Source: Neoechinorhynchus agilis
Lineage: Eukaryota; Animalia; Acanthocephala
Length of the DNA stretch: 64,000 nucleotides
Direction of reading: 5' to 3'
Assembly (NCBI GenBank): GCA_051530055.1
Contig: CM121342.1
Location: 7,696,691 to 7,760,690, forward strand
Part shown: piece by piece, positions 13,253-53,976 of the stretch
How positions within the stretch are numbered: the stretch's first letter is position 1
Layout of the letters: each line of letters opens with the position of its first letter
Made by a program: the position numbers and the translations under genes
Notes under the pieces: generated by a model
The model's database searches: none
What the model was told of the DNA's origin: nothing
What the model saw: only the letters and a program-made list of their open reading frames with translations

Positions 13253-15513
13253 TCAACAAATATTGCGAATATTCTTTGAGTATCAAAGGTCGAATTTTGC
13301 AATATTTTTTAACTCGACATTGCAAATGGTAGAATTGCTTGATTGTTTACGTGCAATCTTCAAAGCAAATTCCATTTTTATGAGTAAATTTCACCCAATA
13401 AAACCATGTAAAAGTAATTGCAAATCGATAGTTAACCTGTTTATTGCGGTCCTTTAATTCTTTATTAGTATTTCTTCTAAAATCTTCCAACGTTATTCAA
13501 GATACTTCTATTGGCCACAAATTGCGACGTAATTGAACCTCTTTTTGTCAAGTGCTTATAAAATAAAATTGCAAGTTGTCACGGTGCTGAGATGAATGGC
13601 AATTTGCCTTCATTTCGGTTTTTGGTTCAATTAAGAATATCGGCAATTTGGGATCCTACAGTGCTTGAATAAAAAGTACTTTTCATCATAACACCGAAGT
13701 CTTTAATTTAGGAGCTTGTTTTAAAAGATTAAATGTTTACTGAATTGTTTTTATAACTAAATCACAACAAATCTCGGATAATCAAAAGTTTTCAACAAGT
13801 TGGAAACAAAAAGTACACATTATAGGCAAAACCCATTAATAATATAACCATTAAGAGTCGAATGGGACTTAAAGAGAGGGTATTACAAATGAAATCGATT
13901 ATAACTAATGGCTTTAGATTTGTTCAGATTTTCATGATGCCTCAAAAGAAATGCAACGATAAAAGATGGAATAAAATAGAGCAGAAAAGTATCCAATACT
14001 TCAGCAGACCAATAAACAGAATAATCCTATGACGTGGTGGATTAATCAGCCGCTAAGATTAATCGAGCAAAACATTGAAATAAAATCACTGATTTTCAGT
14101 TCAGATCTCGAAATAAATAGTATGACAAATTTTTCCAACTTTGAAACATTGAAATTCTTGATGCAGCTTAAAAACACCAGTCGCATATTCATGGATTCTT
14201 ATTGGTAGAAATGCAATTATTATCTAGTAAATAATAATTTATCAATCAGCATTTTCCAGAAATTGTTTTTTAATTATATAATGATTACGTAATATAATTA
14301 TACCACAAAACGAAACCCTTTCTGAGACGGTCACAAAAGCGAAAAAGCTATATTGCCCAAAAATGAATAACGATCAAAACGAAGATGAGCTAATGCAATC
14401 CGACCAAGAGAGCAGAGATGGGTCGTCTTATTTTCTCAGACCTGAACACCCCGAGGACAATGAAACGCTGGCTCATTTGAACGAAAATATCCCTGTAGCT
14501 GCTGCGTTTTTCGAGAATAGCTTGGTGCGTGTTATCGGTGCAATGGGTCCCTACCAATTTTACGTTTGGCCATTGAACGAAGCTGAATATAATTCAAATT
14601 TTCTCTATGAAATGAATGATTATTATTCTAGTCCCGCTAACCAGAATGACAATGACCATGGATCAGGAGATGAAATGACTATTCACGTTGTAGCTTATGG
14701 AGGGCAATATTACCGAGCTCGCATTTTAATTCGACAATATCGTCTTTATACCGTTTATTTGGTCGATTTCGGTATTACGGCAATCGTAGAAGAATGTTTC
14801 ATATTTACCTGCGAACCGCAATTTGCATTAGTGCCGGATATGGCATATCCATGCAGTCTAGAAGATGGCCAGTCGCCCTCAACGGGTTCAATTTTCGATG
14901 AAATTCTTTTTCGAGCAATTGTTCTTGGAAACGTATTTGAAGCTCAACTTTTATATGTCGATACGTTCGAATGGACACGAATTATTGTAAAACTTTGGAG
15001 AGTTCAAAGAATCGGGTACGAGTTTATTAGGATTGCAAACGACCTGGAAGTGCAAGATCAACGAATACCAATTAGAGCGTTGCTATTGGATGTACAAAAT
15101 GTGATAAGGCTTCGCTATCCAAATCTCCTTTCGTAAGATGGACAACAGATAAACCGAAGGTATTATCTTCGGACAAGTGAAGAATAACTAGACGATTTTT
15201 TGACGATTAACATTTTAATATATTCCAAATTATTTTATTTAATAAATATTAACGAATTGTTTTGCAGATCAATGGATACCTTTCCTTTTAATAAAATGAA
15301 GCAGTATGTTAAGGAGTTGGTTAGCAACAGAAGGAATACATCCATCACATTCGTTTGAGTAAATGTACAAATATTGATAAATTTATACAAATATTTAACA
15401 TATTTGGTTCCTTGTACGACCGCTCGATACACAATTATTTGGGAATAATTATTTTTATATTGCCTGAAAGATATTGTTTAGTATTTACGTTCCCAAATAA
15501 ATAAATTATTCTA
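13252..15513 (+). repeat. ~2.26-kb segmental duplication of 36698-38959 (spacer plus Tudor gene)
   Basis: Near-identical along its length by eye; the two 257-aa ORFs differ by one residue (Q/M). Confidence 0.95.
14363..15136 (+). CDS. Intronless single extended-Tudor-domain protein (257 aa)
   Basis: GGQYYRARIL..YTVYLVDFGITAIV..F..VPDMAYPCSL matches the Tudor consensus (WYRA..V.V.FVDYGN..LP.QA..C.L). Confidence 0.85.
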   Translation: MNNDQNEDELMQSDQESRDGSSYFLRPEHPEDNETLAHLNENIPVAAAFFENSLVRVIGAMGPYQFYVWPLNEAEYNSNFLYEMNDYYSSPANQNDNDHGSGDEMTIHVVAYGGQYYRARILIRQYRLYTVYLVDFGITAIVEECFIFTCEPQFALVPDMAYPCSLEDGQSPSTGSIFDEILFRAIVLGNVFEAQLLYVDTFEWTRIIVKLWRVQRIGYEFIRIANDLEVQDQRIPIRALLLDVQNVIRLRYPNLLS

Positions 15514-16752
15514 CGAGAATCAATGCCGAGCGGATGTATGATATATTGTTCAACCAATTTGGATTCCATAAAGTGGCTTGCCTCACTTCGTGCAATTTGG
15601 CTGCTTTAAGATACATGGCCGTGGATAATTGTGGAACTAATGATTGTGTCGTTGTAAAACAATGGTTCTCCTCTTTAGTCGGAATTTCAAATTTATCTTT
15701 TTTTTTGAAATTCGAATTTTTCGTGCGAACAATCACCATTTTTTTCCTTGATTCAATAAACTTTTCTAGCAGCGAACCACAAAAATTTATACTAAACGTT
15801 TAAGCTCTTTACTGAATGAATTTTTAGGCTTCATTTTTAAGCGTTAGAAACCGCTGAACTTACTGAAGTTTGGGTAAATACAATTAATTTTTTTATTTTC
15901 TTAGTGAAATGTCTTCATCAGTGAATATTCTTCATTATCTTCCTTGTGATTCTTTATTTATAGAATTCATTAAAGAACAAATAAGACACAGAACGTTTTT
16001 CCTACTTATTCATCTGGATAAATTTTTATCATTAAAATTGTATATGATTTGTTTGCACGGCAAATTTTTTTGCCGTAATAATGGTGAGCCAAATATATTC
16101 AAATTTTTTTATTAAGATTATTTATAAGTCCTCAATTTCATTTCGTCAATTGGACCTTTTAAAGGAAACATTTATTGTAAACGACATTAAAGAAAAGTCA
16201 TGTTTTGTCGCCTTGGACTTTAAAAATACAGCCAATTCGATTGACGACGATCAACTGATTAAAGTTTACAATATTCCGGATTTTATTACCCAATGCGAAG
16301 GTACATTGGAAGATTATGACGAAGAGGACAAAGATGGCAAGCGTCAAAAAGTCGTTCTGGACGTTGAACGATACACGATTCCCGAATTTTTGTTTCAGCC
16401 TTCGCTTATCGATATTGATCAAGCTGGAATCGCTGAGAGCACTGTTAATTGCATTAATCGATGTCCAGAAGATAAACGGCGCATCTTATTCGCAAATATT
16501 GTCCTGATTGGCGGGAACGCTAAGATTCCCGGTCTAATAGATCGTTTTGTTAAAGATCTTCGAGGTTTATGTCAAAGTCAATATACTGTCTGCGTGTTCA
16601 AACCGCAAGATCCCGATGAATACGCTTGGCATGGAGGTAAAATATTGACTGATCAAGAATTTCTGAAAAACCCAAAAGTTTTTGTTCGCAAAGATGATTA
16701 TTTGCGGTTGAGTTCTCGTGTTTTTAACGCTGAATGCTTTAATAAAATTTAA
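15505..16752 (+). pseudogene. ACTR6: ARP6 3' half, lacking its N-terminus; one conserved segment not found
   Basis: 15505-15655: STRINAERMYDILFNQFGFHKV..NLAALRY..DCVVV. 16120-16752: ISFRQLDLLKETFIVNDIKE..CFVA..ERYTIPEFLFQPS..NIVLIGGN..YAWHGGK. These follow ARP6 order and motifs. Confidence 0.9.
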
Positions 16753-17430
16753 GATAGTCTGGAACTACATGCCTTTTCTTTTCACTGACATTCATCAAGT
16801 GAAAAAACAATTAAAGGTTTCTCTATTCCAGTTATTTTCAACCTTGGGTTTGTTGGAATCGTTCGTATTACTAATTTCTTCATTAAAAATAGTTCATAGC
16901 AGCTTTCGACGGTACTTTTTGTACACTGAGAAACTCACTACACTTTAAGAAGCATTATCAAACATCCGAAAAGTGTTAAGCAAGGTTCTATAGTTCCGTG
17001 AAGAGATTTCAACTATTGTTCAGTCTGCCTTCACCACTCTCTAATAAACAGAATTTTCATAATGCAGCTCGTTTATTTGGCTGACTTTTTTTTGCTGAAG
17101 TCAAAGCTATGAATCTCAACCTACAAGGCAACAAAGTGTTGCCGATTTCATTTACAAGTTAACGTTGTACGAGTAGTTTGTAAAAAAAGCACCCCGTTAT
17201 GTTTGCAAAACTCCACTCTTTTTTGGAGGAGATGTGCCTACACTTGAATGGCATCCAAAAACACTTGTAAAACTATTTCCATGACTTTCTTCAGCCTAAG
17301 AAACACGTTTAGATGGTGACCGACTTTCACAATCTAAGAAAAGACATCGCGCACTGAAAACGGACATTCAGGAATGTGATCCAAAAGATATCGATATGTG
17401 CGAGGAGGTATCGGGGGGAAATGTGATTGG

Positions 17431-17520
17431 AATTATTGTTTAGAAGTCTTTACCCGCGGTAAATGATTATTTCGATTAAAAACGTTCTATGAACCTCGAA
17501 AGCGGTTCATCATCAGTTTG
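17431..17520 (-). mobile_element. PLE pLTR remnant with degenerate hammerhead
   Basis: First ~55 nt identical to the left arm at 5616; minus strand CAAA-CTGATGA-T-GAACC(GCTTTCGA)GGTTC..GAAC-GTTTT. Confidence 0.65.
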
Positions 17521-17618
17521 TTAGTAATAGTTGAGATAGATAAATCAAATATAACAAACGCATTTTCAAAACAATAAATTAAAAAATATTACATATTAAT
17601 CATTAAAATTTAATAGCA

Positions 17619-18419
17619 TCAATCGTCGTTATCGGTTGGATATCGATGACGGTGACGACGATTCCTAATCATGCTTGTCAACAAGCGATCTTGATCCTGT
17701 TGCGGTAGCAAGTTTATTGCAGTCCATAGCAAATCACAAATGGGTACTCGTCGAGATTCTTCTACCCGCTGTTGGTTGGCGTTTTTGATTAAGTCATAAC
17801 CCTCTTCCAGTACTCTCCAAAGTCTTACAACAGTTTGTGTCCATTGGAATGTATCGACATATAGAAGCTGGGCTTCGAATACATTTCCAAGAACAACATT
17901 TTGAAAAGTAGTTTCATCGCAGCTTATATCCGTGGGCAGCTGATCTTCTGTTAGGCTGCATAGATATGCCATATCCTGCATGGATGCAAATCGCGGTTCG
18001 CATATAAATATGGAACTTTCGTCTATGATCAAGTAACGACCAAAGTCGAACAAATAAACTGCCACCATCTTTGCGATATTAAAAAGGACTCGAGCTCTAA
18101 AGTACAGTCCACCATAATTGACTATGTAAGTTGTCGCAAAATTTTTACATTCTCTTTGAACATTGATCCGATTGCTTTGATTTGAATAATAATCATTTAT
18201 TTCATATAGCAATTCCCAGTTGGATTTAGTATGGTTCAATGGCCAAACGTAGAATCGGTAAGGACTTTCTGTTCGGACAACACGGACCATGCTGTTCTCG
18301 AAAAACGCAGCAGCGTCAGGAAGATTAGCGTTCAAATGAGCCAGCGTTTCATTGTCTTCGGGGTGTTCGGGCCTGAGAAAATAGGACGACCGATCTCTGC
18401 TCTCTTGGTCGGTATGCAT
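17619..18419 (-). CDS. Diverged intronless Tudor-domain paralog (266 aa)
   Basis: Shares the N-terminus DQESRD.SSYFLRPEHPEDNETLAHLN and the Tudor core GGLYFRARVL..VYLFDFG with 14363/37809; different C-terminus. Confidence 0.85.
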   Translation of the reverse strand: MHTDQESRDRSSYFLRPEHPEDNETLAHLNANLPDAAAFFENSMVRVVRTESPYRFYVWPLNHTKSNWELLYEINDYYSNQSNRINVQRECKNFATTYIVNYGGLYFRARVLFNIAKMVAVYLFDFGRYLIIDESSIFICEPRFASMQDMAYLCSLTEDQLPTDISCDETTFQNVVLGNVFEAQLLYVDTFQWTQTVVRLWRVLEEGYDLIKNANQQRVEESRRVPICDLLWTAINLLPQQDQDRLLTSMIRNRRHRHRYPTDNDD

Positions 18420-19429
18420 TAAGAACGATTTTTCGTCTTTGTTACCATCTCAAGAAGGGTGACCGTTGTGAAGTATAATTAGTTTACGTAATCATTATAT
18501 AATTCAAAATAAATACGTGAGAAGTGCTTATGTATTTACTAAATAATAAATACACTTCTACCAATAAGAATCTTCGAATAAGCGATTCGTGTTCACAAAT
18601 TTGGAATGGAAATTATTCAGGAGCTCCAAAATGAGACATTTTCACACCACTTTATGCATTAATAAAAACATTGCTATTTTTGAATGTTAGAAATTGACAG
18701 AATTTTTCGACATGGTTACAATACACAAATTTTTGCAGAAAAATTGTAAAGGCAAATTTAAATATATTTAAAACAGTTACTGGACTTCAAACTCTTTGTT
18801 CATGAGTTAGAACCTCTATGTTGCAAGAAAACGCTTTCTTCGTAAGATTGGTGGCGAAATAAACACTATGATTACTTTGTTTAAACAATTTGAATCGTAA
18901 ATCGTTCCCCTAAATTTTTTTGACTCGAGCAACCAAATTTAATTTTAGACATTCGCTTTCGAATATATTGATCGATGAAAAAATATTAACTATACAACCG
19001 GACCTGATATTGATGTTATTCGAGGTTGTAGAATTATGGCAACCTAGTTTAAATTGCGAGAAATTTCAAGCTGAAGTAATAAAATACCATTTGTGTTGAA
19101 AAAGTACATTCCTTTTACCTTCAGCAATATCGCCTATTGTGTCATTCAAATCGTCCAACTAAATCTGTTTTTTTTTCTTATCGCTTTTCGGGGCTATTGC
19201 TAAGTGCCAGTATCCGTTTATTTACATATTGATTTAATAATTCTGCTATCGTTTTGGGCCCGATCATACAAATCAATCAAAAGCTTCGAATGTCATAAGT
19301 CGGATTAAGAATTTCAAGGGTCGACAGCTTAAGCTACATTATTTCTAATTTTTTAAGGCGTCTAACTTTTATTATGCTTTCATATAAAATATTATTTCAA
19401 TTAGCGATATTCACTCAGAAATAGATTTA

Positions 19430-20885
19430 TATTGAAAATTTTCGGCCTTTTCGTTGGCCTTCTTCGGTCAGATCTACAATTTAAAAGAAACATTATCAAT
19501 TAGTTTATCCGGTGGGACTCATAGATTGAGTTTATTGTCAGCTTTGTTGCCAACAAAAGTACCTGTTTGCTGGATCATGATGGCTTCCATGGTCACTCTG
19601 TCGCGTCTTACGTCACTCCTCCCAAGAACTTCGACGCCGTCAAAATTGATCTCATGCCCATTGTCATTGATGTGGGACACTATTGCCGAGCTCACATCAG
19701 ACTTTTTGATAGCTGCTCTTCTGTGTTCAGCAATCCTTCTTTTTGGATTGTTCGTTTGTCCCACATATGACAGACTGCAATTCGAACATGGGATCTTATA
19801 GACACATCCAGCTGGAAGATCTTCATTCTTCGGTCCGAGTATTCCTTGGAGAGTCCTGCCCTTCCTACTATACGTAGTGAACACTTTGTCCTTATCGATT
19901 CGTCTTATCGGGGTTTATATTTTAGAGTTCCATTGATCACTGATGAATGGCGTCTCGATAAATTGCTTCTTTTCCTCCTGATTGTCTGTTCTCATCACAC
20001 GAACATATCGAGCTGCCTTCATACATTTCTCAATGTACATCCTTGAGTAACCACTCACTTTTAGTTTGTTGTAGATCCAATTTAATTCATATTTCAGTAG
20101 TACCTCATCCGAACAGTACCGAAATGCTCTGATGTACATCGACCTGGCTCTTGCCGATTTGTATCTGATCGGTTGTGCAGAGATCCATGGGATCACCATA
20201 TGTGGAACCCCTTGCTTCCTTTAAACCAACGTCATGAAACCATTGCCCGGAATGAGTGTTACTCGTACGTCCAAAAAAGGTAAATTACCATTTTCCTCCT
20301 CTTCCATTGTCCATTTTATATTTTGGTGGCAGCTATTTAGCTCTTTGACAAGTTGTATCGGTGAACTCCTATTGGGATCTAGGATAATGAACGTATCATC
20401 CACATATCTTAGCCAGAGATTCACACCATTCAACTTAGACAAATATTTATCCTCCCATGTTCTCATATATAGCTCCGCCAATACTGGGGACAATGGACTT
20501 CCCATCACCATCCCGTCCACCTGGTCAAAATTTTCATTTTCAAACAGAAAGTTTGAATATTATGTACAAAATTGAGGAAGCTGACGCCACTTAACAGCTG
20601 AGATCTTCCATTCTGAACAGTTTTTAACCAACAAGTTTGTGGCTAGCTCAATTACCTCTTTCACCGGTATCTTAGTAAATAAGGACGTTACATCTGCAGA
20701 AACCATGAGACCAGATTCGTTTGCATTCATCTTGTTCAATCGATCAATGAAATCTACTCCCGATTTAACCACATGATTTGATCGGGGTAGGAGCTGTTTA
20801 AGAAAACTCGCTAATTTCCTCGATAACTTATAATTATAAGAAGAGTGTGCAGCGATGATGGTTTGCTTGAAATTTTTCAGTCACT
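19430..20885 (-). mobile_element. 5'-truncated Penelope-like element (RT, GIY-YIG, pLTR hammerhead) with a few stops/frameshifts
   Basis: ADVTSLFTKIP, GMVMGSPLSPVLA, WLRYVDDTF, LPFLDV, GCVYKIPCSNCSLSYVGQT..RIAEH; hammerhead at 19433-19470. Confidence 0.95.
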
Positions 20886-21209
20886 GCAACAAAAAGAAAA
20901 AATCGGAAGAGTATTGAAACATCCTATTTACTTAATGTTGAATTGCATAAAAGGCATTCGATAATGAAATATCAACTTATTTTAATCACGATTTTGTCTA
21001 AATCAATTCGAACTATTTATTACATGCATGATCGATCTTCATTTATGCGAACGATATAGAAATCAAGATCGTCGATCCTGAGTGTAAAGATGAAATTTCT
21101 GTTATGTTTTTGCTATGATTTGCGGTGAGTCATTTCTTTGAGAACTTCAACATGTTTTACAAAGCAGATTTATTTTAGAAGCAGCAAAAACTTTTGTTAT
21201 CACACTCTC

Positions 21210-21650
21210 TTATTTTTTCCGTTTTTTTGAAAGACAACGTTGGTTAACGAACCAACCTTTGACAACTTTAAACGTAACTTTGAGACGTTCCGATATACTG
21301 TTCAATTCTTCTTTTGGCGGACTCTTGTTTACCTGATTAAAATAGGTGTAAAGAAACTCTTTTTGTTCCGCAGTGAATCTCGTCCGAGTTATCCTCCTGG
21401 GTTGCTTGTTTAACATGGGATAAGACGTCGGAGTTGGACAAAAAGTCGGTGTTCCCACCGATTGTTGTGTGTCTAAATTAACGGATTGAGATGTACTTAC
21501 GCAACCCTGGGTATAATAATCATGGTAGCACCAATCCACCGTATTTTTTTCATAATTTTGTTGACAGTTAAATTGGTACGATTGTTGGTATTGATAGCAA
21601 TATTCGCAGCCCATGCATTGTTGAACACCATTGAGTTGATACTGATTCAT
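21210..21650 (-). CDS. Divergent single-exon homeobox protein (146 aa)
   Basis: RRITRTRFTAEQKEFL..YF...P....L..ISERL.....VVKGWFVNQR retains R5, F8, L16, F20, W48, F49, N51, R53. Confidence 0.8.
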   Translation of the reverse strand: MNQYQLNGVQQCMGCEYCYQYQQSYQFNCQQNYEKNTVDWCYHDYYTQGCVSTSQSVNLDTQQSVGTPTFCPTPTSYPMLNKQPRRITRTRFTAEQKEFLYTYFNQVNKSPPKEELNSISERLKVTFKVVKGWFVNQRCLSKKRKK

Positions 21651-23221
21651 TTATAAAATTATCTAGCGCGATTCTGTTAGGAGTGACAATGAACCCTTCT
21701 TTTATCGGCAGCTCAAATTGTCGAAGCTCTTCGGTTCTCGATTCTAGCCGTGAAATCTGTTTTCGACATTCTGATTGGCTGAATAAAGTGCAATCTAACC
21801 AATATTAAAATTAAGGTCAATTCGATTTCCGGTGGAGGCAGTAGGGTGTAACTGAAGCGTTAATTATGTCCGAGTCTTAATAAAAGATTACTCATGGATA
21901 AATTGCTAAATGTATTGGAATTTGCATTCTATTTTACATTCTTCACAATAATTTTCATAAATAAAAATTAAAAAACCCTGTATTAGAAAATATCAAGCGT
22001 GATTTTTGTTATAAAATTATTAAAACATTTCGTTGAAAAATGATTCTAATATTTCACAAAAAGCGTGATTAATTTGCAAACGGATTATTGATTGAATCAC
22101 TTCCCGGATCCAAGATATCGGTTGGCTTTTTGCTTAAACGATAAAGCCGAGTAAGGGATGTTCCAACACTTAATTAATGTAGCCTGCTTGCCGAATTACA
22201 TAAGCGAATTAAAAAACATTTATATCCATAGAATAAGATGGAAATTTATCGTGATTATACAATAAGTTTCCGTCGCATTTTTATTGCATTGGAAAAATCA
22301 ATTTCTTGCAATGGTTTTGAAGTCATTTGATAATATTTGGACACAGTATAAAGCTCTTTATTTATTTATCTTCAATTCTTATCTCTGTGTTGACACGACA
22401 AAAACTTAAGTTAATAAAATATCAACGTTGAACTGAAATAGTTTAATACATTCAGCATTTACGTTTTAACTTATGTTAGATTTTTGTCCTTTTTACAATA
22501 TATCTACAAAAATGAATATCTATCTATTCGTATTTAGCTCTATCGAAAGTAGTTTAAACCGATGTCATTGGTAATATTTATCACCTAATTATCACCGCCA
22601 ATTTTAAGTTCCAATAAACTTTCCTCTGGCTCTATTTTTGGGTCGCAAAATCATTCGTTTCGACAGTGTGCTTAATGATTTAAAAAATTAATGTAAAACA
22701 ATTGCATTTAAACTTGAGTATATTACTTAATTTATCGTTTAAATTTTTGTACGTTTTATCGCTTAACCTGCGTTCTTAATTCTTAACGATATGCTGAGTA
22801 ATTATCACATTCCAATAATATTGTGGGATTCGTGAGAGGTTCCGTTGTATTGTCTTTAGATCATTGAACACTTTACAAACTCGTTGAAAGATGTTCATTA
22901 ACACTTTATTGGTTTGTTATCATCACTACTAAATAGGAGGAATGTTTTTGTACTTTATGATACACTCCCTTTTAAATCTGTGACATTTGGGAATTCAACT
23001 ATGAATTAAGGTTGCTTTTAAAGTTAAATTTGTATCAATATCTGTAAATATAGAACAGTTTTAGATTGCGATGAATCAAAAACTTAGCTTGGACGAATTC
23101 AGAAGGATTTTTGTGTAAGTGCAAACATTGTGTTCTGCTCTATATATTTAACGCTCCGCTGACCATGAAATTCTCATTATTCCTTAGCTTCTCGTCGAAC
23201 GCAACATCATAAATCAGCAAA

Positions 23222-23850
23222 TATGGATAAGCGAATCGACGATTCGAATGAGTCTAATTTCGATAAGCCGCGGGTTAGACGATGATACTCTTGCAAACCC
23301 TCATGTAGAATACCAAAGGATTTCCAGTTAAATAAAAATAAAAATGAAATTACAGCTATCATCCGCGAAGAAAAAATTTGGTTGGCCGAAGACGGTAAAA
23401 ATTTCTGCGATCAAAAAAGAAATTCCTAATGATCTTCACATGGCGGAATCAGAATTCGTAAAAGCTAAAGAGGATGGAACTTTTTAATTAAAGGATACAA
23501 AATATCCTGCTATTGAAGCAAAAGAATTGGTTCAACGAAGTGTTGTTAAAAAAAGCGAGATCCAAGAAAGAGAGTTTGAAAAGTTTAACAGTATCGACAA
23601 GTCATTACACAAATTGGACAATTGCAACCAGTGTTCCGAATTGATTGCATCCATTGCGAATTATCCATGGAGCAGTAAGAGTAAAGCTGCGAGCATTTTT
23701 TAGCGATAAAGCCACACAGACAGTCCAAGAACAAGAAATCGAAACAAATGAAAGGAGTGAATTTGAGCGAAGGTTTCATCCTTTTGAACAATCTCGTTGA
23801 ATTCTCGATTCTGACGTTCGAAAACCTATCACAGAACATTTAAGATTGAT
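23222..23850 (+). pseudogene. Coding-like relic of unknown family
   Basis: Long charged, protein-like stretches (e.g. AIEAKELVQRSVVKKSEIQEREFEKFNSIDKSLHKLDNCNQCSELIASI) interrupted by isolated stops and frameshifts; no motif recognised. Confidence 0.25.
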
Positions 23851-24940: not shown

Positions 24941-24962
24941 CAATTCAAACAATCTGTTTGAA

Positions 24963-37808: not shown

Positions 37809-38582
37809 ATGAATAACGATCAAAACGAAGATGAGCTAATGCAATCCGACCAAGAGAGCAGAGATGGGTCGTCTTATTTTCTCAGACCTGAACACCCCGA
37901 GGACAATGAAACGCTGGCTCATTTGAACGAAAATATCCCTGTAGCTGCTGCGTTTTTCGAGAATAGCTTGGTGCGTGTTATCGGTGCAATGGGTCCCTAC
38001 CAATTTTACGTTTGGCCATTGAACGAAGCTGAATATAATTCAAATTTTCTCTATGAAATGAATGATTATTATTCTAGTCCCGCTAACCAGAATGACAATG
38101 ACCATGGATCAGGAGATGAAATGACTATTCACGTTGTAGCTTATGGAGGGCAATATTACCGAGCTCGCATTTTAATTCGACAATATCGTCTTTATACCGT
38201 TTATTTGGTCGATTTCGGTATTACGGCAATCGTAGAAGAATGTTTCATATTTACCTGCGAACCGCAATTTGCATTAGTGCCGGATATGGCATATCCATGC
38301 AGTCTAGAAGATGGCATGTCGCCCTCAACGGGTTCAATTTTCGATGAAATTCTTTTTCGAGCAATTGTTCTTGGAAACGTATTTGAAGCTCAACTTTTAT
38401 ATGTCGATACGTTCGAATGGACACGAATTATTGTAAAACTTTGGAGAGTTCAAAGAATCGGGTACGAGTTTATTAGGATTGCAAACGACCTGGAAGTGCA
38501 AGATCAACGAATACCAATTAGAGCGTTGCTATTGGATGTACAAAATGTGATAAGGCTTCGCTATCCAAATCTCCTTTCGTAA
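37809..38582 (+). CDS. Intronless single extended-Tudor-domain protein (257 aa)
   Basis: Nearly identical to 14363-15136. Confidence 0.85.
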   Translation: MNNDQNEDELMQSDQESRDGSSYFLRPEHPEDNETLAHLNENIPVAAAFFENSLVRVIGAMGPYQFYVWPLNEAEYNSNFLYEMNDYYSSPANQNDNDHGSGDEMTIHVVAYGGQYYRARILIRQYRLYTVYLVDFGITAIVEECFIFTCEPQFALVPDMAYPCSLEDGMSPSTGSIFDEILFRAIVLGNVFEAQLLYVDTFEWTRIIVKLWRVQRIGYEFIRIANDLEVQDQRIPIRALLLDVQNVIRLRYPNLLS

Positions 38583-39956
38583 GATGGACAACAGATAAAC
38601 CGAAGGTATTATCTTCGGACAAGTGAAGAATAACTAGACGATTTTTTGACGATTAACATTTTAATATATTCCAAATTATTTTATTTAATAAATATTAACG
38701 AATTGTTTTGCAGATCAATGGATACCTTTCCTTTTAATAAAATGAAGCAGTATGTTAAGGAGTTGGTTAGCAACAGAAGGAATACATCCATCACATTCGT
38801 TTGAGTAAATGTACAAATATTGATAAATTTATACAAATATTTAACATATTTGGTTCCTTGTACGACCGCTCGATACACAATTATTTGGGAATAATTATTT
38901 TTATATTGCCTGAAAGATATTGTTTAGTATTTACGTTCCCAAATAAATCAATTATTCTAAGTGCTTTCCACAACATTAAATATTTTTTAAATTGATCAGA
39001 AATTAACAAAAAAATTTCCATTACAAAACGCGCGAATAAAAAATGTCGAATCGAATTTGTCTAGTTCTAAATTCAGATTCACTTAAGTAATATTCGTTTC
39101 AACTAGTAAACAAAGATAAAGTCGAAAAAATTTACAAATGCTGCATATCGACAGTGACAAATTTCGGATATCTTTGCAAAAGTACGATTATGTTAAATTA
39201 AGGTACAAAGTTAATACTTTTAGTAAAAGACTTTGCATAAATGATGATTGGCTACCTCGATAAGAATGTTGCAAGTTTTCACCCACTTTTAGGTAAATAA
39301 GTGAATTTTCGTCACTCAAATGAAATAAATTACTCGAAGGACAACGAACGTATTTCTGACTAAATAAAGCGCGAGAAATATTTTTAATTTCTACGATCGT
39401 GGAATACCAATATTTTGTCATTTTAAAGCAATATTTTCTATAAGAAGTATAAAGATGATACGTAAATTAAATTCGGACTTATCATAGAGTGAGATCCTTA
39501 TATAAAGTAAGAAGTTTGAATAAACGCTAATAATTTCTGTAACTATTTCGATTACTTATAGGCGTACGTTGTCATTTAATTGCCCAAGCGATATTCATAG
39601 GAAAGTTGCAGTTTTCCTAGAAAAAATCGTATCCTGCTAGTTACAATAACTAGTAAATTTTAAGAATAAATTTTTTTGGGAAAGCCGATAGACATCATGG
39701 ACTCGAATTCGAACAGGAATTGGCGAGAAAAATAAACAACTTTTCAATCTAATACAACTCCTCATTCAGCTCGGCCAAATTAGATCAAACAATTCGCTCG
39801 AAAATATACAAGCAACACAGTATTCTTATAATATTAATAAAGAATGCAATGAAATCAGTGGAGTAAAATGTGAACCCTTTTTATTTCTATATGTTGCTTG
39901 CTCTTACCGTAAAAGAAATCCAACGATAAAAAGTTTTAATAATAGGATCATAAAAT

Positions 39957-41885
39957 TCAGTAATTATAAGTTGCTTTAATTTTCATTCCATTGACGACGA
40001 TCTGTCCAAGCGATCTCATCATTGCGAAGCGATCAATATTAAAGTGTTGGACTAGATTGTTTGAAACATTCAAGAAAACAAGATTCGACATTTTGATATC
40101 ATAAAGACTTCCCGGTATACTTCTAAGTTTGTTATCAGCAAGATTAAAAAATATAAGATTTTCCAATCCGTCGAACGCATCAACAGGAAATGTACTGAGA
40201 TCGTTTTGACTGAGATCGATAGCTTCCAACAGGCTAGCAGCTTCAAATGCTTTGGACTTTATATTGGTTATTATATTTGATTGGAGACTCAAATATTTAA
40301 GATTGGATAATCCTGAAAAATCGGAAGGAGCAAGCATTGTTATTTGATTATTGCTCAAGTCCAGAGAAGTTAAAGTATCGATTAGCAGCCACGTGCTTAA
40401 TTCTCTCACCGTTACCAGGTTTTGGTTTTTTAGCGAGATAATCTGCGTAGCTCTTGGACCATCGATTTTCAAGGCGGCCAAAATGGACTGCGGGACGAAT
40501 TCCGAGCGAAGACCGAAGTACGCGAGAGCCAAGTAAGTGTTTGTCCTATTAAAGGTAACTGTTGATATGTTATTTCCCCGTAAAACCACCGATGAAATGA
40601 AATACATGGGAGAATTTCTTGCAATCAAATCTCGAATTCGATTTTCGGACAAGTCGATATATCCCAGTTTTCTTGTATTCCGGAAAAGATTGCGATTGAC
40701 ATAATTTAGTTGGTTGTAACTAATCGAGAAGATTTCCAGTAGACCATTATTTCTAAAACTGTCCGAATTGATCGTTGTTATTAGATTATGATCAAGAAAT
40801 ATATCTCTTAAGTTGGTTAACTTTGAAAATGCGTTTTTGTGGAAACCTTTAATTTTATTATCTTGAAGATGTAGTATTGTAAGACTTGTCCAGTAATCGA
40901 AATCATTTTCGTCGATGAAATTTATTTGATTAAACGCCAATGAAAATTTCTTTATATTTTCCTTTGTTTGTAAGTTTCCAGGTGGAATCGATTTCAATTG
41001 ATTTCTCGTTATCTCGAGATTTTCAAGTCGAGGTGCTGCAACTAACAAGTTAGTGTCAAACGCTTTAGCTGATCCATCAGTGACAATAAATTCATATAAT
41101 CTTGAATATTGGCCTTTATTTCTTAATAAATCGGTTACATTTGCGAGATAGGTAATATGGAGATAACGAAGATTTTTAAACGATTCCATTTTGTCTACGG
41201 ATTTTATTGGATTACCAACTATGTACAATTCCTCAAGATTGTAAAAAGCGCTGTAGTCCTGTGCAGATAAATGTTCAATCAAATTATTATTTAAATCCAA
41301 TACTTTTAGGTATCTTAGTCTGCTAATAACGTTTATACTTTCACTTGTGAGAATATTGTTCGATAAACGAAGTATCCTCAATAACGGCAATTGCTTTGGG
41401 AATTGGGTGGGAATTACTGATATGTTGTTGAAACTCAAACTTAGTCGAAGAATTCTCTTAAATTCTTTAAAAGCGTCCTCTTGAATCTTATCAATTCCAG
41501 CTCTTTCAATGTCCAATTGTTTTACATCTCTGAATTTATAAAGTAAAGAACTGCTGAGTACTGGCGATTTGTATGACTTTTCCGATTCATGAGAGAAAGT
41601 TACTTTAACGACTTGGGGAAATAACGAGGCAAAATTTTCAGGAATATCTTTAAGATCGACATTATTAAATTCAAAATTTTCATGATTGCGTTGAGCCGAT
41701 CGTAATAAATTATTAATCGATTTCATTCTGCCAACATCATCATTTTGGTAACATCGTATTCCAACGCCTGAGATCGGTTGACAGTGCGTTAACCCGCACT
41801 TCGGTTCTCTTCCACTCGGTTCCATTGAATTAAGTTTTTGTTGAATGACTAACAACAGAATATTTAAATAAAACACTTTGAACAT
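39957..41885 (-). CDS. LRR protein copy C: intact, intronless, 642 aa
   Basis: 1929-bp ORF from MFKVFYLNILLLVIQ; paralog of B. Confidence 0.92.
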   Translation of the reverse strand: MFKVFYLNILLLVIQQKLNSMEPSGREPKCGLTHCQPISGVGIRCYQNDDVGRMKSINNLLRSAQRNHENFEFNNVDLKDIPENFASLFPQVVKVTFSHESEKSYKSPVLSSSLLYKFRDVKQLDIERAGIDKIQEDAFKEFKRILRLSLSFNNISVIPTQFPKQLPLLRILRLSNNILTSESINVISRLRYLKVLDLNNNLIEHLSAQDYSAFYNLEELYIVGNPIKSVDKMESFKNLRYLHITYLANVTDLLRNKGQYSRLYEFIVTDGSAKAFDTNLLVAAPRLENLEITRNQLKSIPPGNLQTKENIKKFSLAFNQINFIDENDFDYWTSLTILHLQDNKIKGFHKNAFSKLTNLRDIFLDHNLITTINSDSFRNNGLLEIFSISYNQLNYVNRNLFRNTRKLGYIDLSENRIRDLIARNSPMYFISSVVLRGNNISTVTFNRTNTYLALAYFGLRSEFVPQSILAALKIDGPRATQIISLKNQNLVTVRELSTWLLIDTLTSLDLSNNQITMLAPSDFSGLSNLKYLSLQSNIITNIKSKAFEAASLLEAIDLSQNDLSTFPVDAFDGLENLIFFNLADNKLRSIPGSLYDIKMSNLVFLNVSNNLVQHFNIDRFAMMRSLGQIVVNGMKIKATYNY

Positions 41886-42429
41886 TGCCTTTAAAAAACG
41901 ACGACGAAAAAATGGAGACAACTCGTGTACATTTGTACATTTGCATGAGTAAAAATATGCGTGAGATCTTTAAAGAATGAGTATAAGAGCAATACAACGC
42001 TCTTTCTCCCGCCAAATTTCTCTTCTATCTCGGTAACTTTAGCGACTTCTAATTGACCAGAATGATAATTTTCGGCCATGAATACAGTAATGTGAACCTT
42101 TCAATCGGAAGCGTAAATGAATTATAATTAAAAATGGCATCATTGTAAAAATAATCGATTTTTTTTCAGTCTGCGGCAAATTAAAATTTAATAGAGGAAT
42201 GAAACTTTAACAAAAAGTTTGAGAATTAGAATAATTTTTCAAATTTTGTCTCGACTTGAATCCTTAATAACAATTATTTTTCGTCTATATCGAACAAAAA
42301 AGGATTCCTAGATGTTGTTAAATAATTTTTTAACAAGCGAGATTAATTTTTATTAACATTTAATAAATAGACGTATTAATATTAATCGATTTCGAATTGT
42401 CGTATAAATGTAAATAAAACTTTTTATCC

Positions 42430-43610
42430 AATTTCTCATAAAGAACGCGCTCTTCATCCCCAAATTATTGTACAAGGTTCGCACAGCAACATTTTTCAAA
42501 CACAAAAAAGGATTGGCAAAGCTGGACGATAAGGTGAGGGCATGCCTTGAGCGTATTTTAAATGTCCAGCTCTCAGATGAAGCGTGGCGACAAGCTTCTT
42601 TGCCTGTGTCATCTGGGGGATTGGGAATTCGGGCACTAGTCGACCTTGCTTTGCCGGCCTTTCTTGGATCGTTTGAGGGGAGCTTACCAGTCTCGAAGAA
42701 CATTTTGAAGGAAAAGTTCTGTCTTGACCGGGATTTCGTGGTGGCGGTTGAGGAATGGTGCCAGCAGACAGGCGCTAACCATGTTCCCGTGAATGGCCTC
42801 AGACAGTCGATCAGGGACGGACCTCTTGTCGCGAGAGCTCACAACTCTCTACTTTCCGGTTCTCGTGATGGGGTCGTCCGAGCTAGACTGTTGGCAGTTT
42901 CAACACGAGAATCTGGGGCGTGGTTGGAGGCTGTTCCTCTGGCATCAGTGGGAACTCTTCTTACTGACGAGGTAACGAGGATCGCAATATCTTTAAGACT
43001 TGGTCTCCCGATATGCACGCCCCATCGCTGTCGATGTGGGTCTTTGGTTGATGCTTTCGGGCGACACGGTCTCGTCTGCAGAATGTCAGGAGGAAGGTTC
43101 TCACGCCATTCTGAAGTCAATAACGCAATTTCTCGGACGTTGAGAACGGCGAACTTCCTGAACATCCTGGAACCCGCCCACCTCTGTAGACTAGACGGCC
43201 GTAGGCCCGATGGAATTTCGGTCTTCCCGTGGCGGGAGGGCAAATGCCTTCTCTGGGACGCCACGTGTGTGGATACCCTCGCAGCCAGCAACATCCCCTA
43301 CTCCCTCGAAATCGCCGGCGGTGCCGCCAGTGCAGCGAAAGGGAGGAAAATACGGAAATATCTTCACTTATCGAGGGCTCACTATTTTGTCCCCTTTGGG
43401 GTAGAGACGTATGGAGCGTTCGGCAGCTCGGCACTCCCTCTGCTCCAGGATCTCTCGAAGAAATTGAGAGAGGCAACCGGAGACTCAAGAGCAGGCGTAT
43501 TCCTTCGACAAAATATCTCGCTAGCAGTACAACGGGACAATGCTGCCAGCGTGATGGCGACGGTCGAGGAAGGACAAAAGCTGGAATTCGGCGGGAGGTG
43601 GTGAGTGTGT
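42430..43610 (+). mobile_element. 5'-truncated CRE-clade non-LTR retrotransposon (thumb, zinc knuckle, restriction-like endonuclease)
   Basis: QASLPVSSGGLGIR; CRCG..DAFGRHGLVC; RRPDG..LLWD; KIRKY; VETYG; open to the stop at 43604. Confidence 0.9.
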
Positions 43611-43899
43611 TAATTGTCGAGAAATAAAGATTGATTGAATACATTTACAAGATAACCAGTTGTATTTCCACTTTTATTAAGTTATACCTCAAAAACTAAA
43701 AGCAATGAAGGGTTTTGACGAACTAAAATGCAAATTTTTGTACTTAAGGCTCACGGACTAGCCGGTTACATTTATTCTGTGCTGAATTGAAGGCTTTTCC
43801 ACGGCTGATAATTTTCTTTGGCTCTTATAACAACACTTTTTTGTTAATTGACAAAGAATAGAAACACTCGAGTTCTGATTGGATAAATGAATCCGGCTA

Positions 43900-44560
43900 T
43901 TTTTTTAATAATAATACGTTTATTGGTAAAAAATACAGAATAGGACCCATGTGCCTTTGGGCACTCGAATTAAAAGTTGTTCAAAAAAGTGTATCCGTTA
44001 GGATGGGATTATCCAGTGGAGGGATGTCCGTTCGGATGGGACTATCGAGTCAGGGGAGGTTCGTTAGAATGTGTCCGTCCGTTTGAGAACATCCGGTCGG
44101 GTTGGAAGGTCTACGTAGAGTTTGTGATTGATGTAGAAATATTTTTGTGTGTGATTTCGTTAGAGATTTAGGAGATGAAGAGCTGGGGTGGTGAATGGGT
44201 GATGAGGGTGAGATCGTAGGCATTTAAGAAAGGTCGTTTGAAAAATATTAAAGAGAGGTGGTGACAGTACAGCACCTTGAAGTACGCGTTTGGTGAGGGA
44301 TAAGCTGGTTTCTTAGAATTCCTCTTTAGTAGCTTTGTCTGCCCCTTTGAACCGTTAACGTTTTTCCCTTTGTACTTTTTGACTTCGATCAACTATTCAC
44401 TTTTAAGAACTTCAATTTCGAACTGAATAGCCACCGCTAATATATCCTTAACTGTGCTCATCGTTTCAATTAATAAGTCCTTTAGAGTTTCAGAAACTCA
44501 TTCAAAGCACTTTTTAGTGCAACATCAATAAGAGTAGAATACTTGGCCGATTCTCGTTTA
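43900..44560 (-). mobile_element. LINE 3' end with short poly(A) and ~31-bp internal tandem repeats
   Basis: Minus strand ends AATAAACGTATTATTATTAAAAAAA at ~43900; ORF relic LFKVLYCHHLSLIF; TCCGTT(A/C)GGATGGGA(T/C)TATC repeated at ~43997-44060. Confidence 0.5.
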
Positions 44561-44876
44561 CTGCTCATTGATTTTAGCAGAGAGAGTAAACGTTGACGAG
44601 AGATAGGACGTTTTTGAAGTGGATTACGCGTTTAATAAGGTTGGAATATCCGGTCGAGTGAGAAAGTTGGTGAATTGCTTCCGAGAAGATGTCACGGCCC
44701 GTAACACACAGCTGAGTATCACACGTAAATGAAAGATGAGTTTAGGGATCTGGGTTGTTTGCTTAAGGAAAATTATCTGCCACAAAAAAGACCTTCACTT
44801 CAACGCAGAATAAAAGACAAATAATGTGGCCAGAAAGACGCAGCTGATTTTTTTTAGTAATGAAATTCGTTGTCAG

Positions 44877-45656
44877 TGTGGCGGCGACTTCTTCCACTTG
44901 AATGACGGGCAGCCGGAAGAAGTTTCCTTGCTCCGAATGAAGGAGGGACAACAAGCATTTGACCAATGCTTGTTGTCCCTCCTTCATTCGGAGCAAGGAA
45001 GGAGGGACAACAAGCATTTGACCAATGTAGATATCACAATAAACTTCGTGTTCTTCACGTGACGCCGCCAAATTGGTGACCCAGACGAGACTGGCCTGGT
45101 CAGCGTCCTGACCAGGCCCAGCAACAACATTCAGGCCTTGCTCCTCCAATACCCTGCTGTCCTTACCTCGACGAGACCGGCCTGGTCAGCGTATTGATCA
45201 GGCCCAGCTGCCAGCAACACGCCGTCATCACACCGAGGTTCAACTCGGTTGCTCGACATAAGGCCCAGCGCAGCGTCGTGATACGCGGACCTCCTTGCTC
45301 AACCCAACGAGCCAAGCAGCGTTCGCCAATGTCACCGATGCCTCAACACTGGCAGTCGGTGCAGCCCACAAACAACGGACCAAAGACGGCACCTGGTGGT
45401 TCTATCCTTCAGCAGGAAGCTTCACTATGCCGAGACGCGACAAAGCAGCTTCGACAAGGAGCTTTCAGCCATATCCTTCAGCAAGGACGGAACGGATTAG
45501 TGCGGCGACACTGGAGGGAGGTATGTGGCGGCGACTTCCACGTGAATGACGGGCAACCGGAAGGAGTTTCCTTCCCCCGAATGAAGGAGGGACAACAAGC
45601 ATTTGACCAATGTAGATATCACAATAAACTTCGTCTCTTTCCGTGACGCCGCTAAA
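44877..45656 (+). mobile_element. TRIM-like internally deleted Ty3/gypsy element (probably CsRn1-like): LTR-PBS-pol relics-PPT-LTR with 4-bp TSD
   Basis: LTRs 44877-45072 and 45524-45656 both start TGTGGCGGCG and end CGCCGCYAAA. PBS-like TGGTGACCCAGACG at 45074; PPT GGAGGGAGG at 45513; TSD TCAG at 44873 and 45657; RNase H relics TDASTLAVGA and SFSRKLHYAETRQSSFDKELSAI. Confidence 0.85.
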
Positions 45657-45799
45657 TCAGGAGAAGCAGAAAATTCCGAAATCTATGCTAAAAATAAAAG
45701 TTTTTCACGTTGTTGATGCTTATGAATATTTTATGGAACTATCAAACGTCCGTTCAGAGGAAAGAGATAAACTGGCTCAATTTGAAAAATATTTTTTTC

Positions 45800-48225
45800 A
45801 GAAAGCCATCGGGGAAACCTGATGCCGACCCACGCCCGGATAAATGGGGAGGGTTGGCGGCAGGAAGGGCATCCGGCTGTAAAACATTTCGCCCCAATAA
45901 AACCGAAAATGAACAATCAAACGAGTACAAGACCTCGGTCTGGGCGTCGCCCGTAGCGAAAGAGGATCGATACGCTGTTTGTGGGGATTTCAATGGTCAT
46001 GTGGGAGCTGAGAACATAGGATGTCACCAAGTGCATGCTAGAAAAGGCTTCGGAAACAGAAATCAGGAGGGCGAATGTATTGTAAATTTCGCATTAGCAA
46101 ACGATTTGAGGATCGCAAATACATCTTTTCAGAAGCCGACGAGACAACTTGTCACATATAGTAGCGGTGGACGACAAACTCAAATCGACTACATTCTGTA
46201 TCCACAAAGTAAATGGAAAGAAGTTAGAGACTCAAAAATTGTTCTAGGAGAAATATGCACAACATAACATTGACCATTATTGATCGATCTTCGAATTCGA
46301 AACATCAATCGAAGAAAATATCAGACAAATCGCAAGATCAAATGGTGGCGCCTCGAAGAACCGCAAAGTCGAGAAAAGTTCAAGAAGATGGTGATCGGCA
46401 ATATAGATTATGACATCGTGGACCCTAATGTTTGGTGGATTAAAACAGCAGAGTTCATACGGTGCGCCGGAAGGGAAACTTTCGGACAGACCTCAGGGAG
46501 AAAAGGACCTAAAAGGACAACTTGGTGGTGGAACGATGCAGTCCGAATTGCAGTGACAGTCAAAAAAGAGGCCAAAAAGAAGATGGACCTTGATAGATCT
46601 GAAGAAAACAAGAAAATATACAAGGAGGCCAGAAGAAGAGCAAAGGTAGCGGTGTTGATTTCGAAGCAAGATGCAGAGGCGGCTTTCTATTCGAGGATAC
46701 AGGAGGATGAAGGAAATTCGTATGTATTCAAAGTTGCAAGAATCAAAGACCGAAAATCGAAGGACGTAACGAGTGTGAGGCAAGTCATATTTCGAACAAC
46801 TTCTGAATTCCGAAAATCCCGGGGGAAAAAGTGGAAATGAAATTTCGAACCAAGGATTTTTACAAACCATATCGAATAAGAAGTCAAGATAGCTCTTTCC
46901 AAAATGAAAAACGGCAAAGCGACTGGACCAGATGAAATACCTATAGATTTCTGGAAAGTCTTGGGGGATAATGCTATTCATTTATTGACTAAATTTGTAC
47001 GACATATCTTTGATGCTGAACGGATTCCAGACGAATGGAGGCGAAGCATTATGATCCCGATTTTCAAAAAAAGGGGGATGTCAGAGATTGCAACTGCTAC
47101 AGAAGAATCAAATTGATATGTCACACGATGAAGCTGTACGAGCGAATAATTGATCGACGCTTGCGGAGTGAAATATCAATATCTGAAATTCCGAGTAGCA
47201 TAGATGCAACATTTGCAATGAGGCAGTTGTACGAAAAGTGCTACGAAAAGCAGAAAGAGCTGCACAGTGTCTTCATTGACCTCAAAAAGTCCTACGACAC
47301 CGTCCCCGGAGATCTGATATGGATGTGCCTGAGCAGAAAATTCTGTCCAGCGGTATACGTTCGAGTAATACAAGATATGTACAAGGAATGCAAGGTAATA
47401 GTAAGAAGCCCGGTCGGAAACACGAGCGAATTCCCCGTGAAAGCTGGACTACATCAAGGATCAGCACTAAGTCCATATTTATTCGTGATAATCATGGACG
47501 TAATCAGCGAACCGTTAAATAGAGGTGCTCCATGGAATATTTTATTTGCTGATGGTATTGTATTGTCGAGCTGAACATGCCATGAACAAAAATGGAGATA
47601 GGCCTTGGAAGGAAATGGTCTACATATCTCGAAGGACAAAAACCGTCTATGTCTGACCGAAAAGCATTTGCTCACAAGATACGCAACTGAACAAAGCTGA
47701 AAACTTCAAATATCTGGGTTGATTCGTATCGAGGGAAAACGACATGACAGCCGAAATAAGAGTTAGGATTCAAAACGGATGGATGAAATGGAGAAGTCTC
47801 ACAGGGATCATTTGTGATAATAAGGTACCACTGATGATAAAAGGTCAAGTCTTTAAGACTGCGATACGACCAGTGATGATTTATGGCTCAGCCACATAAA
47901 AAGACTGCAGGTGACCGAGATGAATATGTTGCGATGGATGATCACCAGGAAAGACATAATCCCAAATAAATATATGCGTGGATCGACCAAGGTGGAGGAC
48001 GTGAAGGAAGTAATTCAGCAACGAAGGATCAAATGGAGCGAGAAAGTAAAAAATGGAACTCGGGACGCATATCCGAAATAGTGGCAATGGAGATTGAGGG
48101 AACAAGGAAACGGGGAAGACCCAAAAAAAGGTGGAAAGACGCAGATGATGAACTATGTTTGATTGTACATTTTTGTGCGACCCCGAAAAGGGATAAGCAC
48201 GAAGAAAGAAGCAAAAGAAATAATT
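45800..48225 (+). mobile_element. Degenerate RTE-clade LINE (APE plus RT)
   Basis: GDFNGHVG, QIDYIL, KATGPDEIP, YRRIKLICHTMKLYERIID, GLHQGSALSPYLF, LFADG, RKRGRPKKRWKD; multiple frameshifts; internal deletion in APE. Confidence 0.92.
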
Positions 48226-48419
48226 AAAACAGTTTCATATTCGCGCAGCATTTCTGCAACGATTCGTTGATATCAGAAAACTTACGAAAAGAAAGCAAAA
48301 CTCCTGATTAAACGGTTTCTTTCTTGGACTCTAAGACTAAATTTCTACCTTTAAGAATCACAGTTTTCGTAACCGACATTGAACTGTTTCGGTAGTCAAT
48401 CATTTTAAAGTGCTATAAA

Positions 48420-48803
48420 ATGAGTTATAAAGAAGAAACCAAAGCGAGCTGTCGATCTTTGTTTCCAAATTCGGCCGATAAAATAACCAATAAGAATAAC
48501 GTGATTGTGCTTGACAATGGAGCTTATTTCCTGAAATTCGGGTCTGCACTCTCTTCGAAGCCTCGAAAGCTTCCGAATTTCTTTGTTCGAACCCGGTCTC
48601 ATCCCCAAAAACATTTTATATCTCTGGATGATCTGGAGCGTTTGGATAAGACTTCAATGGTTTACTATCATTGTTTTTTGGAAGGATACCTTAGCGATTG
48701 GAATATTCAATCACACATTTGGCAGAAATTATTCGAAATTGAGCTGCAAAGATTAGAAATTGTTCCTGAAAATACTTCTATCGTCGTAACTGAACCGATT
48801 AAT
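48420..48803 (+). pseudogene. ACTR6: ARP6 5' half, cut after TEPIN and fused to antisense LRR copy D
   Basis: VIVLDNGAYFLKFG..LPN..EGYLSDWNIQSHIWQKLF..SIVVTEP matches the ARP6 N-terminus (LVLDNGAY, GYLVNWDVQ..VWDYLF, IIITEP). Confidence 0.92.
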
Positions 48804-53962: not shown

Positions 53963-53976
53963 AAGCCGCTTGACAT

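Follow-up and report, generated by a model that had tools for sequence, protein, structure and literature searches.

Several described systems place the pieces of a gene out of their usual order. In an intrachromosomal insertional translocation, or shift, a segment leaves its site, the donor ends close up and the segment re-enters close by without being inverted; a gene split at one of the breakpoints then has its 3′ half upstream of its 5′ half. The same arrangement is found in a 64,000-nt stretch of the genome of the acanthocephalan Neoechinorhynchus agilis (GenBank assembly GCA_051530055.1, contig CM121342.1, positions 7,696,691 to 7,760,690 of the forward strand; hereafter the window), where the gene for actin-related protein 6 (ARP6), a SWR1/SRCAP subunit, is split in two. 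The locus differs from a simple shift in the extra deletion and filler at its insertion site, and in a frequency that appears high for the disruption of such a subunit. Further, complex rearrangements, including those of the chromothripsis or chromoplexy kind, microhomology-mediated break-induced replication (MMBIR), fork stalling and template switching (FoSTeS) and polymerase-theta end joining, resemble the locus in their clustered breakpoints (here three within ~36 kb), in 3-4 nt of microhomology, in fillers copied from a few kb to ~25 kb away, and in a preserved orientation. In contrast to those cases, one filler at the locus is 2.26 kb long, the material is a pooled sample of wild worms and not a tumour or patient genome, and the change may be either balanced or a gain.

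Two other systems are less close. Reintegration of an extrachromosomal circular DNA is comparable in that the ancestral order, circularly permuted, gives 15514-48805, and a preliminary description of this DNA, made from the sequence alone, had proposed a circle opened inside ARP6. The permutation is topologically equivalent, but no circularisation junction was found in the window, the satellite phase at 12821 is offset from that at 27948 by 76 of 204 nt, and a circle is not needed because a second break pair is recognised in a leucine-rich-repeat (LRR) gene, LRR-4. The scrambled genes of Oxytricha-type ciliates likewise carry gene segments in non-canonical order on one strand; in contrast, the N. 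agilis locus has no pointer repeats, it has filler and decay at its pieces, and an intact DNA form appears to be present in bulk DNA.

The assembled haplotype is probably the product of a local three-break cut-and-reinsert rearrangement, present as a broken copy or variant haplotype alongside an intact ARP6. In the reference, ARP6 is broken and an LRR gene truncated at this locus, although the species expresses a 421-codon ARP6, and surveys of gene loss in acanthocephalans could wrongly call ARP6 lost or fragmented. As a natural case of three-break relocation with templated filler the locus is a clean one, and it comes from a parasite with a small genome (46 Mb). It is ordinary in kind, and would be more interesting only if an ARP6-null haplotype proves common and balanced in the population.

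ARP6 is split in the assembly and intact in mRNA

The preliminary description had reported an ARP6 gene whose halves lie in reversed order ~33 kb apart on the plus strand, and comparisons with PDB, Pfam and tblastn confirmed it. The 5′ part (48420-48805, plus strand) consists of the ATG and first 386 nt of exon 1, equal to 128 codons and two letters of the next, after which the frame continues into foreign letters and reaches a stop at 48843-48845. The rest of exon 1 (RINAERMYDILF...DCVVV; 15514-15656, plus strand) is aligned from 15514 to 15656 by X10 record 5 and X11 record 14, two RNA contigs. It is followed by an intron remnant (15657-16125, plus strand; X10 record 6 and X11 record 15, with loose ends at 16126), by the site of a 212-bp deletion (16125-16126), and by the remainder of exon 2 (16126-16752, plus strand; stop at 16750-16752), which has an RNA depth of 100-175. 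The window ARP6 is not one continuous gene: it is split between 48805 and 15514, and it lacks the 108 nt for DTGYSFTH...VGG. No other ARP6 pieces were found by tblastn across the window.

Human ARP6 (6igm_G) is the top PDB match of both large parts, ahead of actin and other Arps. In particular, 48420-48803 (128 aa) matches its residues 3-98 with an E of 6.5e-10 (runner-up Arp1, E 0.0025), and 16123-16749 (209 aa) matches its residues 185-382 with an E of 3.3e-32 (actin, E 5e-26). The Pfam family Actin (PF00022) is detected in the 5′ part (E 9.6e-12) and in the 3′ part (E 2.1e-27). The 49-aa piece at 15510-15656 is 52% identical to residues 57-110 of P0001 (E 1.4e-12, tblastn), the closest relative found, which is a partial ARP6 of 345 aa (48% identical) whose named relatives are actin-related protein 6. 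By sequence similarity, both large parts are thereby assigned to ARP6, being nearer to ARP6 than to actin or other Arps; incorporation of the product into an H2A.Z-exchange complex is putative. The worm's own intact ARP6 protein or locus was not found in public collections, where the representative search returned only P0001, the homolog search nothing closer, and the exact-product look-ups no entry.

The searches inside the window used tblastn, self-BLAST and an exact and half-length letter search, with domain calls by Pfam and structure matches by PDB; the window is AT-rich animal DNA and contains no N runs. The comparison with reads and contigs covered 12830-17200 and drew on one whole-genome shotgun run (X8), one DNA contig set (X3) and two RNA contig sets (X10 and X11), each of the latter from single worms. 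The published 46.2-Mb assembly is a MaSuRCA hybrid of Oxford Nanopore and Illumina reads, mainly from a pool of ~50 worms, with further input from single-female Illumina reads and a little HiFi data; it was then run through purge_dups, instaGRAAL Hi-C scaffolding and gap closing, and the RNA came from 74 sexed worms, each sequenced separately (PRJNA1223661; PMC12690905). Fifty pooled worms had likewise been the source of an earlier Illumina library, with 52 million read pairs (PMC9523657 supplement; PMC12256650), and X3 is probably the PMC9523657 library. Since the DNA is from worm pools, the read fractions given here are population fractions and not genotypes.

Full-length ARP6 mRNA, which the preliminary description had suggested looking for in RNA data, was found in contigs of X10 and X11. 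These single-worm contigs hold one continuous spliced ARP6 mRNA with the peptide TEPIN-NPR-INAERMY. They read ...GAACCGATTAATAATC followed by CGAGA..., with the ARP6 letters of the window stopping at 48805 and restarting at 15514, and the contig tail ...CTATCGTCGTAACTGAACCGATTAATAATC equals the window up to 48805. X11 record 14 (1,354 nt, depth 102) and X10 record 5 (937 nt, depth 122) connect ...CCGATTAATAATC to 15514; left of 15514, the mRNA is the window's 5′ part to 48805 plus 'TC', which is absent between the halves in the window. The corrected junction peptide is TEPINNPRINAERMY. Of the junction first proposed, the TEPIN and INAERMY parts stand; its 'ST' was read from TCTA (15510-15513), letters of the adjoining Tudor-gene copy, and the true peptide has NPR between the two parts. 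Moreover, instead of the few-nucleotide overlap between the halves that had been described, 'TC' is missing in the window, and 212 bp are also gone at 16125/16126.

X11 record 14 passes from 15656 to 16126 via 108 extra letters, and the loose ends of X10 at 15656 and 16126 carry the same letters. These 108 nt (GACACCGGTTATTCC...GGTGGTGCCACTTTAACGGATCACCTA) encode DTGYSFTHI...VGGATLTDHL, the phosphate-binding loop region, which P0001 has too; neither they nor the preceding intron tail occur anywhere in the window by exact or half-length search or by tblastn. The coding part of the mRNA totals 1,263 nt, or 421 codons, in frame and with the DxGxxxTH phosphate loop. The species expresses an unbroken ARP6, with full-length transcripts.

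The left junction, where the Tudor-gene copy meets ARP6, is real. It is present in an X3 contig (depth 169) with A at 15503 and 'ATC' behind 15513, and nine X8 reads with nine different starts show the same ATC form. The X3 junction contig reads ...ATTATTCTAATCCGAGA; the unbroken gene would read ...ATTAATAATCCGAGA, the part common to it and the rearranged form is TAATCCGAGA (TAATC), and the next letter differs. This junction allele of X3 and X8, with its three more letters, loses nothing of ARP6, and it has a 3-nt microhomology, TAA, at the junction. To the right, another X3 contig, record 22, is unbroken from 15509 to 17123.

The contig depths also point to a second DNA form. X3 record 22 (depth 398) extends 5 nt to the left of 15514 and stops there, at the point where broken and unbroken forms would diverge. 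At the rearranged junction the k-mer depth is 169, or 42% of the 398 seen over the ARP6 3′ part, and a depth of ~229 (~58%) must therefore have another left neighbour. In X8, the letter of the Tudor copy in the filler (B1) occurs at 15503 in 27 of 94 reads, the ATC form occurs in 9 reads, and the depth just right of the junction, estimated from depth bins, is ~53, about half of it linked to the Tudor copy. The depths and the branching of the contigs lead us to infer that an intact ARP6 DNA form coexists in the same worm DNA pools. Given the pooled hybrid assembly and purge_dups, it is plausible that the broken form entered the reference as a minority haplotype. An intact ARP6 supplying the transcripts, which the preliminary description had named as the result that would speak against its reading, is thus largely what was observed: directly for the transcripts, and through depth and branching for the DNA.

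The assembled copy shows pseudogene-like decay. X3 record 22 (1,828 nt) runs from 15514 to 16126, continues through 212 extra letters and resumes from 16126 to 17123. The 212 bp lost from the assembled copy are the intron tail with its splice acceptor and the first 108 nt of exon 2 (36 codons); in other DNA and RNA, the intron goes on GTT(A/G)GATGCAAAG... for ~104 nt beyond 16125. Compared with the mRNA and X3, the window has four differences, all of them amino-acid-changing (N/H at 15594, T/I at 16229, N/T at 16235 and T/S at 16289), and at 15594 the expressed form has H, as in P0001. The window-type letters at these four positions occur in 17-45% of X8 reads. The assembled copy also lacks the ATC of the junction allele found in X3 and X8. 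Separately, the G at 15873 agrees with none of 35 X8 reads, and the DNA and RNA contigs all have A; it is probably a consensus error in the reference.

A second break pair and templated fillers

A second complementary break pair exists in LRR-4, at 24938 and 48806. At the donor-site junction (48802-48809), the ARP6 5′ part is fused to the interior of LRR-4 with the microhomology ATAA; in the alignment with LRR-2 and LRR-3, the paralogs read ..AAGATTGGATAA(A/T)CCTG.. and the window reads ..CCGATTAATAAAAAATCTG.. at this position. LRR-4 (48806-50649, minus strand; Pfam LRR_8, E 2e-39) is without its own 3′ end and is 88.9% identical to 34477-36330 and 40313-42011. Its missing 3′ end and 3′ flank lie at 24313-24938 (minus strand; stop at 24591-24593), where the homology to LRR-2 and LRR-3 ends ..TTTAAGATT at 24938 and picks up again, within the next few letters of the paralog alignment, at 48806. 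When 24938 is joined to 48806, a single open frame of 676 aa results, ending ..ATFNY*, as in the paralogs. The letters lost are 0-2 nt for the ARP6 pair (48805/15514) and 2-6 nt for the LRR-4 pair (24938/48806), with the frame kept.

The relocated segment, S2, is 9,425 bp long (15514-24938), and both of its ends complement the two sides of 48805/48806. It contains the ARP6 3′ part, a Tudor paralog (17619-18419, minus strand), a homeobox open reading frame (ORF; 21210-21650, minus strand) and the LRR-4 3′ end with its flank, as assigned by Pfam. The 3′ flank of the moved LRR end also contains, at 24419-24513, a local ~66-bp duplication followed by a palindromic 23-mer, ACAATTCAAACAATCTGTTTGAA. 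On the other side, LRR-4 has lost its stop, and its minus-strand ORF (48707-50488) extends 99 nt into antisense ARP6; judging from this reading frame, chimeric LRR-4 transcripts that end in antisense ARP6 could be made.

The insertion site is marked by the body of LRR-1 (25003-26734, minus strand; Pfam LRR_8 and alignment), whose own 3′ end of ~525 bp is gone. To the left of S2, a filler chain (12822-15513, plus strand; self-BLAST and junction views) consists of 43 nt equal to LRR 35983-36025 (100%), 393 nt equal to LRR-3 40844-41236 (98.5%), and 2,262 nt equal to the Tudor gene block 36698-38959 (99.56%). To its right, a 64-nt filler patch (24939-25002) comprises a 23-nt hairpin copy of 24491-24513 and ~34 nt resembling a retroelement end; the palindromic 23-mer is an exact repeat at 24491 and 24940, and the ~34-nt part matches 53883-53916 and the reverse complement of 43575-43608. 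The sources of all five fillers (43, 393, 2,262, 23 and ~34 nt) are inside the window, among them the genes LRR-2 (34031-36330, minus strand), Tudor B2 (36698-38959, plus strand) and LRR-3 (39862-42356, minus strand). The junction microhomologies are TAA, ATAA and TCAA, and each of the three junctions has 3-4 nt of microhomology or templated filler. The multi-breakpoint event that the preliminary description had offered beside the circle is borne out by the break in ARP6 exon 1, the junction microhomology and the templated filler.

The simplest history that would produce this arrangement begins with the ancestral order LRR-1, 204-bp satellite, LRR-2, Tudor B2, LRR-3, retroelement, ARP6 (two exons, 421 codons), Tudor paralog, homeobox gene and LRR-4. 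One break would have separated codons 129 and 130 in exon 1 of ARP6, and another would have cut LRR-4, setting free the 9.4-kb piece between them (now 15514-24938). The donor ends would then have been rejoined on the 4-nt ATAA microhomology, creating the ARP6-5′/LRR-4 fusion at 48805/48806, and the freed piece would have entered a third break, in LRR-1, 23.9 kb upstream, without a change of orientation. At this reinsertion, LRR-1 may have lost the ~525 bp of its 3′ end, and copied filler would have been added at both flanks of the piece (43 + 393 + 2,262 nt to its left, 23 + ~34 nt to its right). The pattern is consistent with double-strand breaks that were repaired by end joining or template switching. 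The relocated ARP6 3′ part is without a promoter; the functional mRNA would come from an unbroken ARP6, which may either lie, in the ancestral order, on chromosomes other than the rearranged one or be accompanied by an additional copy of the 9.4-kb segment. These two possibilities, that the broken form is an allele or that it is an extra copy, are about equally likely.

Weighing of the alternatives

Several points weigh against a three-break relocation that left an intact ARP6 beside the broken one. The junctions at 48805/48806 and 24938/24939 are known from the assembly alone, the read comparison being that of 12830-17200, and the intact exon 1 DNA is deduced from contig depth and branching, not from one continuous DNA read. 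A simple allele would mean an ARP6-null haplotype at a frequency of ~0.4 in 50 wild worms, which is hard to reconcile with an important gene unless balancing selection maintains it; an extra copy would mean that the clean donor-site deletion in the assembly needs further explanation. The depths fall between the two, and both fit within a factor of ~1.5. In X8, the ARP6 3′ part has ~48x, compared with at most 33x expected (1,523 Mb over a 46.2-Mb genome); in X3, it has 398, where 15.6 Gb would give at most ~270 should X3 be the PMC9523657 library. The B2-type end depth of 397 in X3 equals the 398 of the ARP6 3′ part and favours a simple allele, and the near 1:1 ratio of B1 to B2 letters at the Tudor sites 13600 and 13619 in X8 favours a fixed copy. 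Moreover, the 2,262-nt filler is long for a templated insertion of the polymerase-theta type.

In a rival explanation, the 9.4-kb segment was copied and not cut into LRR-1, every chromosome keeps an intact donor-site ARP6, and the collapse or purging of near-identical copies produced a false ARP6-5′/LRR-4 join. A common ARP6 null allele would be avoided, the ARP6 3′ part does have a depth of ~1.5x the genome expectation in both DNA runs, and the X8 counts of B1 to B2 letters (34:30 at 13600 and 32:25 at 13619) fit a fixed B1 copy. Further, purge_dups trims duplicated sequence where alignments end, and its use here preceded Hi-C scaffolding and gap closing. However, the 48805/48806 join looks biological, with one ATAA copy kept and 6 nt lost relative to a blunt excision; software is not expected to remove exactly the repeat and close the gap cleanly, and an N run is absent from the window. 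The X3 depths of 397 for B2-type ends and 398 are also not predicted by a two-copy S2 with a single-copy B2, unless other Tudor copies add depth. Such a duplicative insertion with assembly collapse is judged unlikely. An outright misassembly, in which wrong joins in a repeat-rich region (the 99.56% Tudor duplicate, LRR paralogs and satellite) created the reversed order and no such chromosome exists, is far more improbable still. The assembly is a pooled Oxford Nanopore/Illumina hybrid reordered by instaGRAAL, and at least one of its bases (15873 G) is supported by 0 of 35 X8 reads, but the Tudor-copy/ARP6 junction is in an X3 contig and in X8 reads, X3 record 22 is continuous from 15509 to 17123, and two independent breakpoint pairs that are complementary within 0-6 nt, with the LRR frame kept, are unexpected of chance misjoins.

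The three-break relocation has also been weighed against explanations in which the two forms have a biological role. The preliminary description had raised, as a more speculative reading, a germline that holds only the scrambled ARP6, with the intact gene or mRNA restored by somatic DNA rearrangement or by trans-splicing. Whole-worm DNA with broken and apparently unbroken forms at roughly comparable depth could indeed be mimicked by a mixture of germline and soma. Against this, splice signals are absent at both breaks (..AATAA/AAAATC.. and ..TTCTA/CGAGA.., the slash marking the break), with neither a GT following 48805 nor an AG ahead of 15514; the mRNA has the 108 nt, absent from the window, and the 'TC' that the assembled copy lacks; the junctions have copied filler and not pointer repeats; the assembled copy has decayed in the manner of a pseudogene; and the X3 contigs branch. 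With no splice signals, and with the evidence for intact mRNA and DNA, trans-splicing is neither needed nor plausible. To our knowledge, no unscrambling system is known in animals, and programmed repair has next to no probability here. That the rearranged chromosome has no working ARP6, yet reaches ~40% in wild worms as a balanced structural polymorphism, for example one carried by heterozygotes only or tied to sex, is a doubtful proposition, and a difference between germline and soma in the broken and intact forms is less likely still.

Two further candidates were rejected, and a third is not supported. Insertion of a transposon into ARP6 with later reshuffling does not agree with the neighbours of the breaks, which are interiors of the Tudor copy and the LRR gene and not element ends. 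A tandem duplication with the window as its middle would need a second ARP6 5′ or 3′ piece close by, but the 15 kb to each side have none, and ARP6 does not continue into the flanks. Finally, insertion into a once-continuous satellite array is at odds with the repeat phase, which is off by 76 of 204 between 12821 and 27948.

Repeats and neighbouring genes

The 204-bp satellite occurs as 3.3 units left of the filler chain (12150-12821) and as 20.8 units inside the segment S1 (27948-32189); the two arrays are 94-96% identical internally and start at almost the same repeat phase. Just left of the small array, 11613-12095 is an old relic of the Tudor upstream region and start, 70-80% identical to and collinear with 36513-36946. 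The Tudor gene itself (257-aa ORF) is present twice, at 13252-15513 and 36698-38959, and is expressed (RNA contig depth ~100). DNA depth rises about two-fold right of ~13900 in the Tudor copy, suggesting that the genome has more such copies, partial and nearly identical, at other places.

A non-long-terminal-repeat retroelement (42400-48200, plus strand; Pfam RVT_1, E 1.5e-18, and Exo_endo_phos_2) ends ~200 bp upstream of the ARP6 start codon. It carries endonuclease-like and reverse-transcriptase ORFs in several broken frames, and its end sequence is found again at 53883-53960. Two ORFs nearer the left end of the window, at 8110-8478 and 11194-11571, show respectively a weak GIY-YIG nuclease match (E 0.0018), possibly from a Penelope-like element, and similarity to BBS7/BBS2-type beta-propellers (E 3.8e-6). 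On the right, a tandem repeat at 53962-63906, with a unit of ~3,975 bp in ~2.5 copies that are 95.6-96.1% identical, reaches near the window end.

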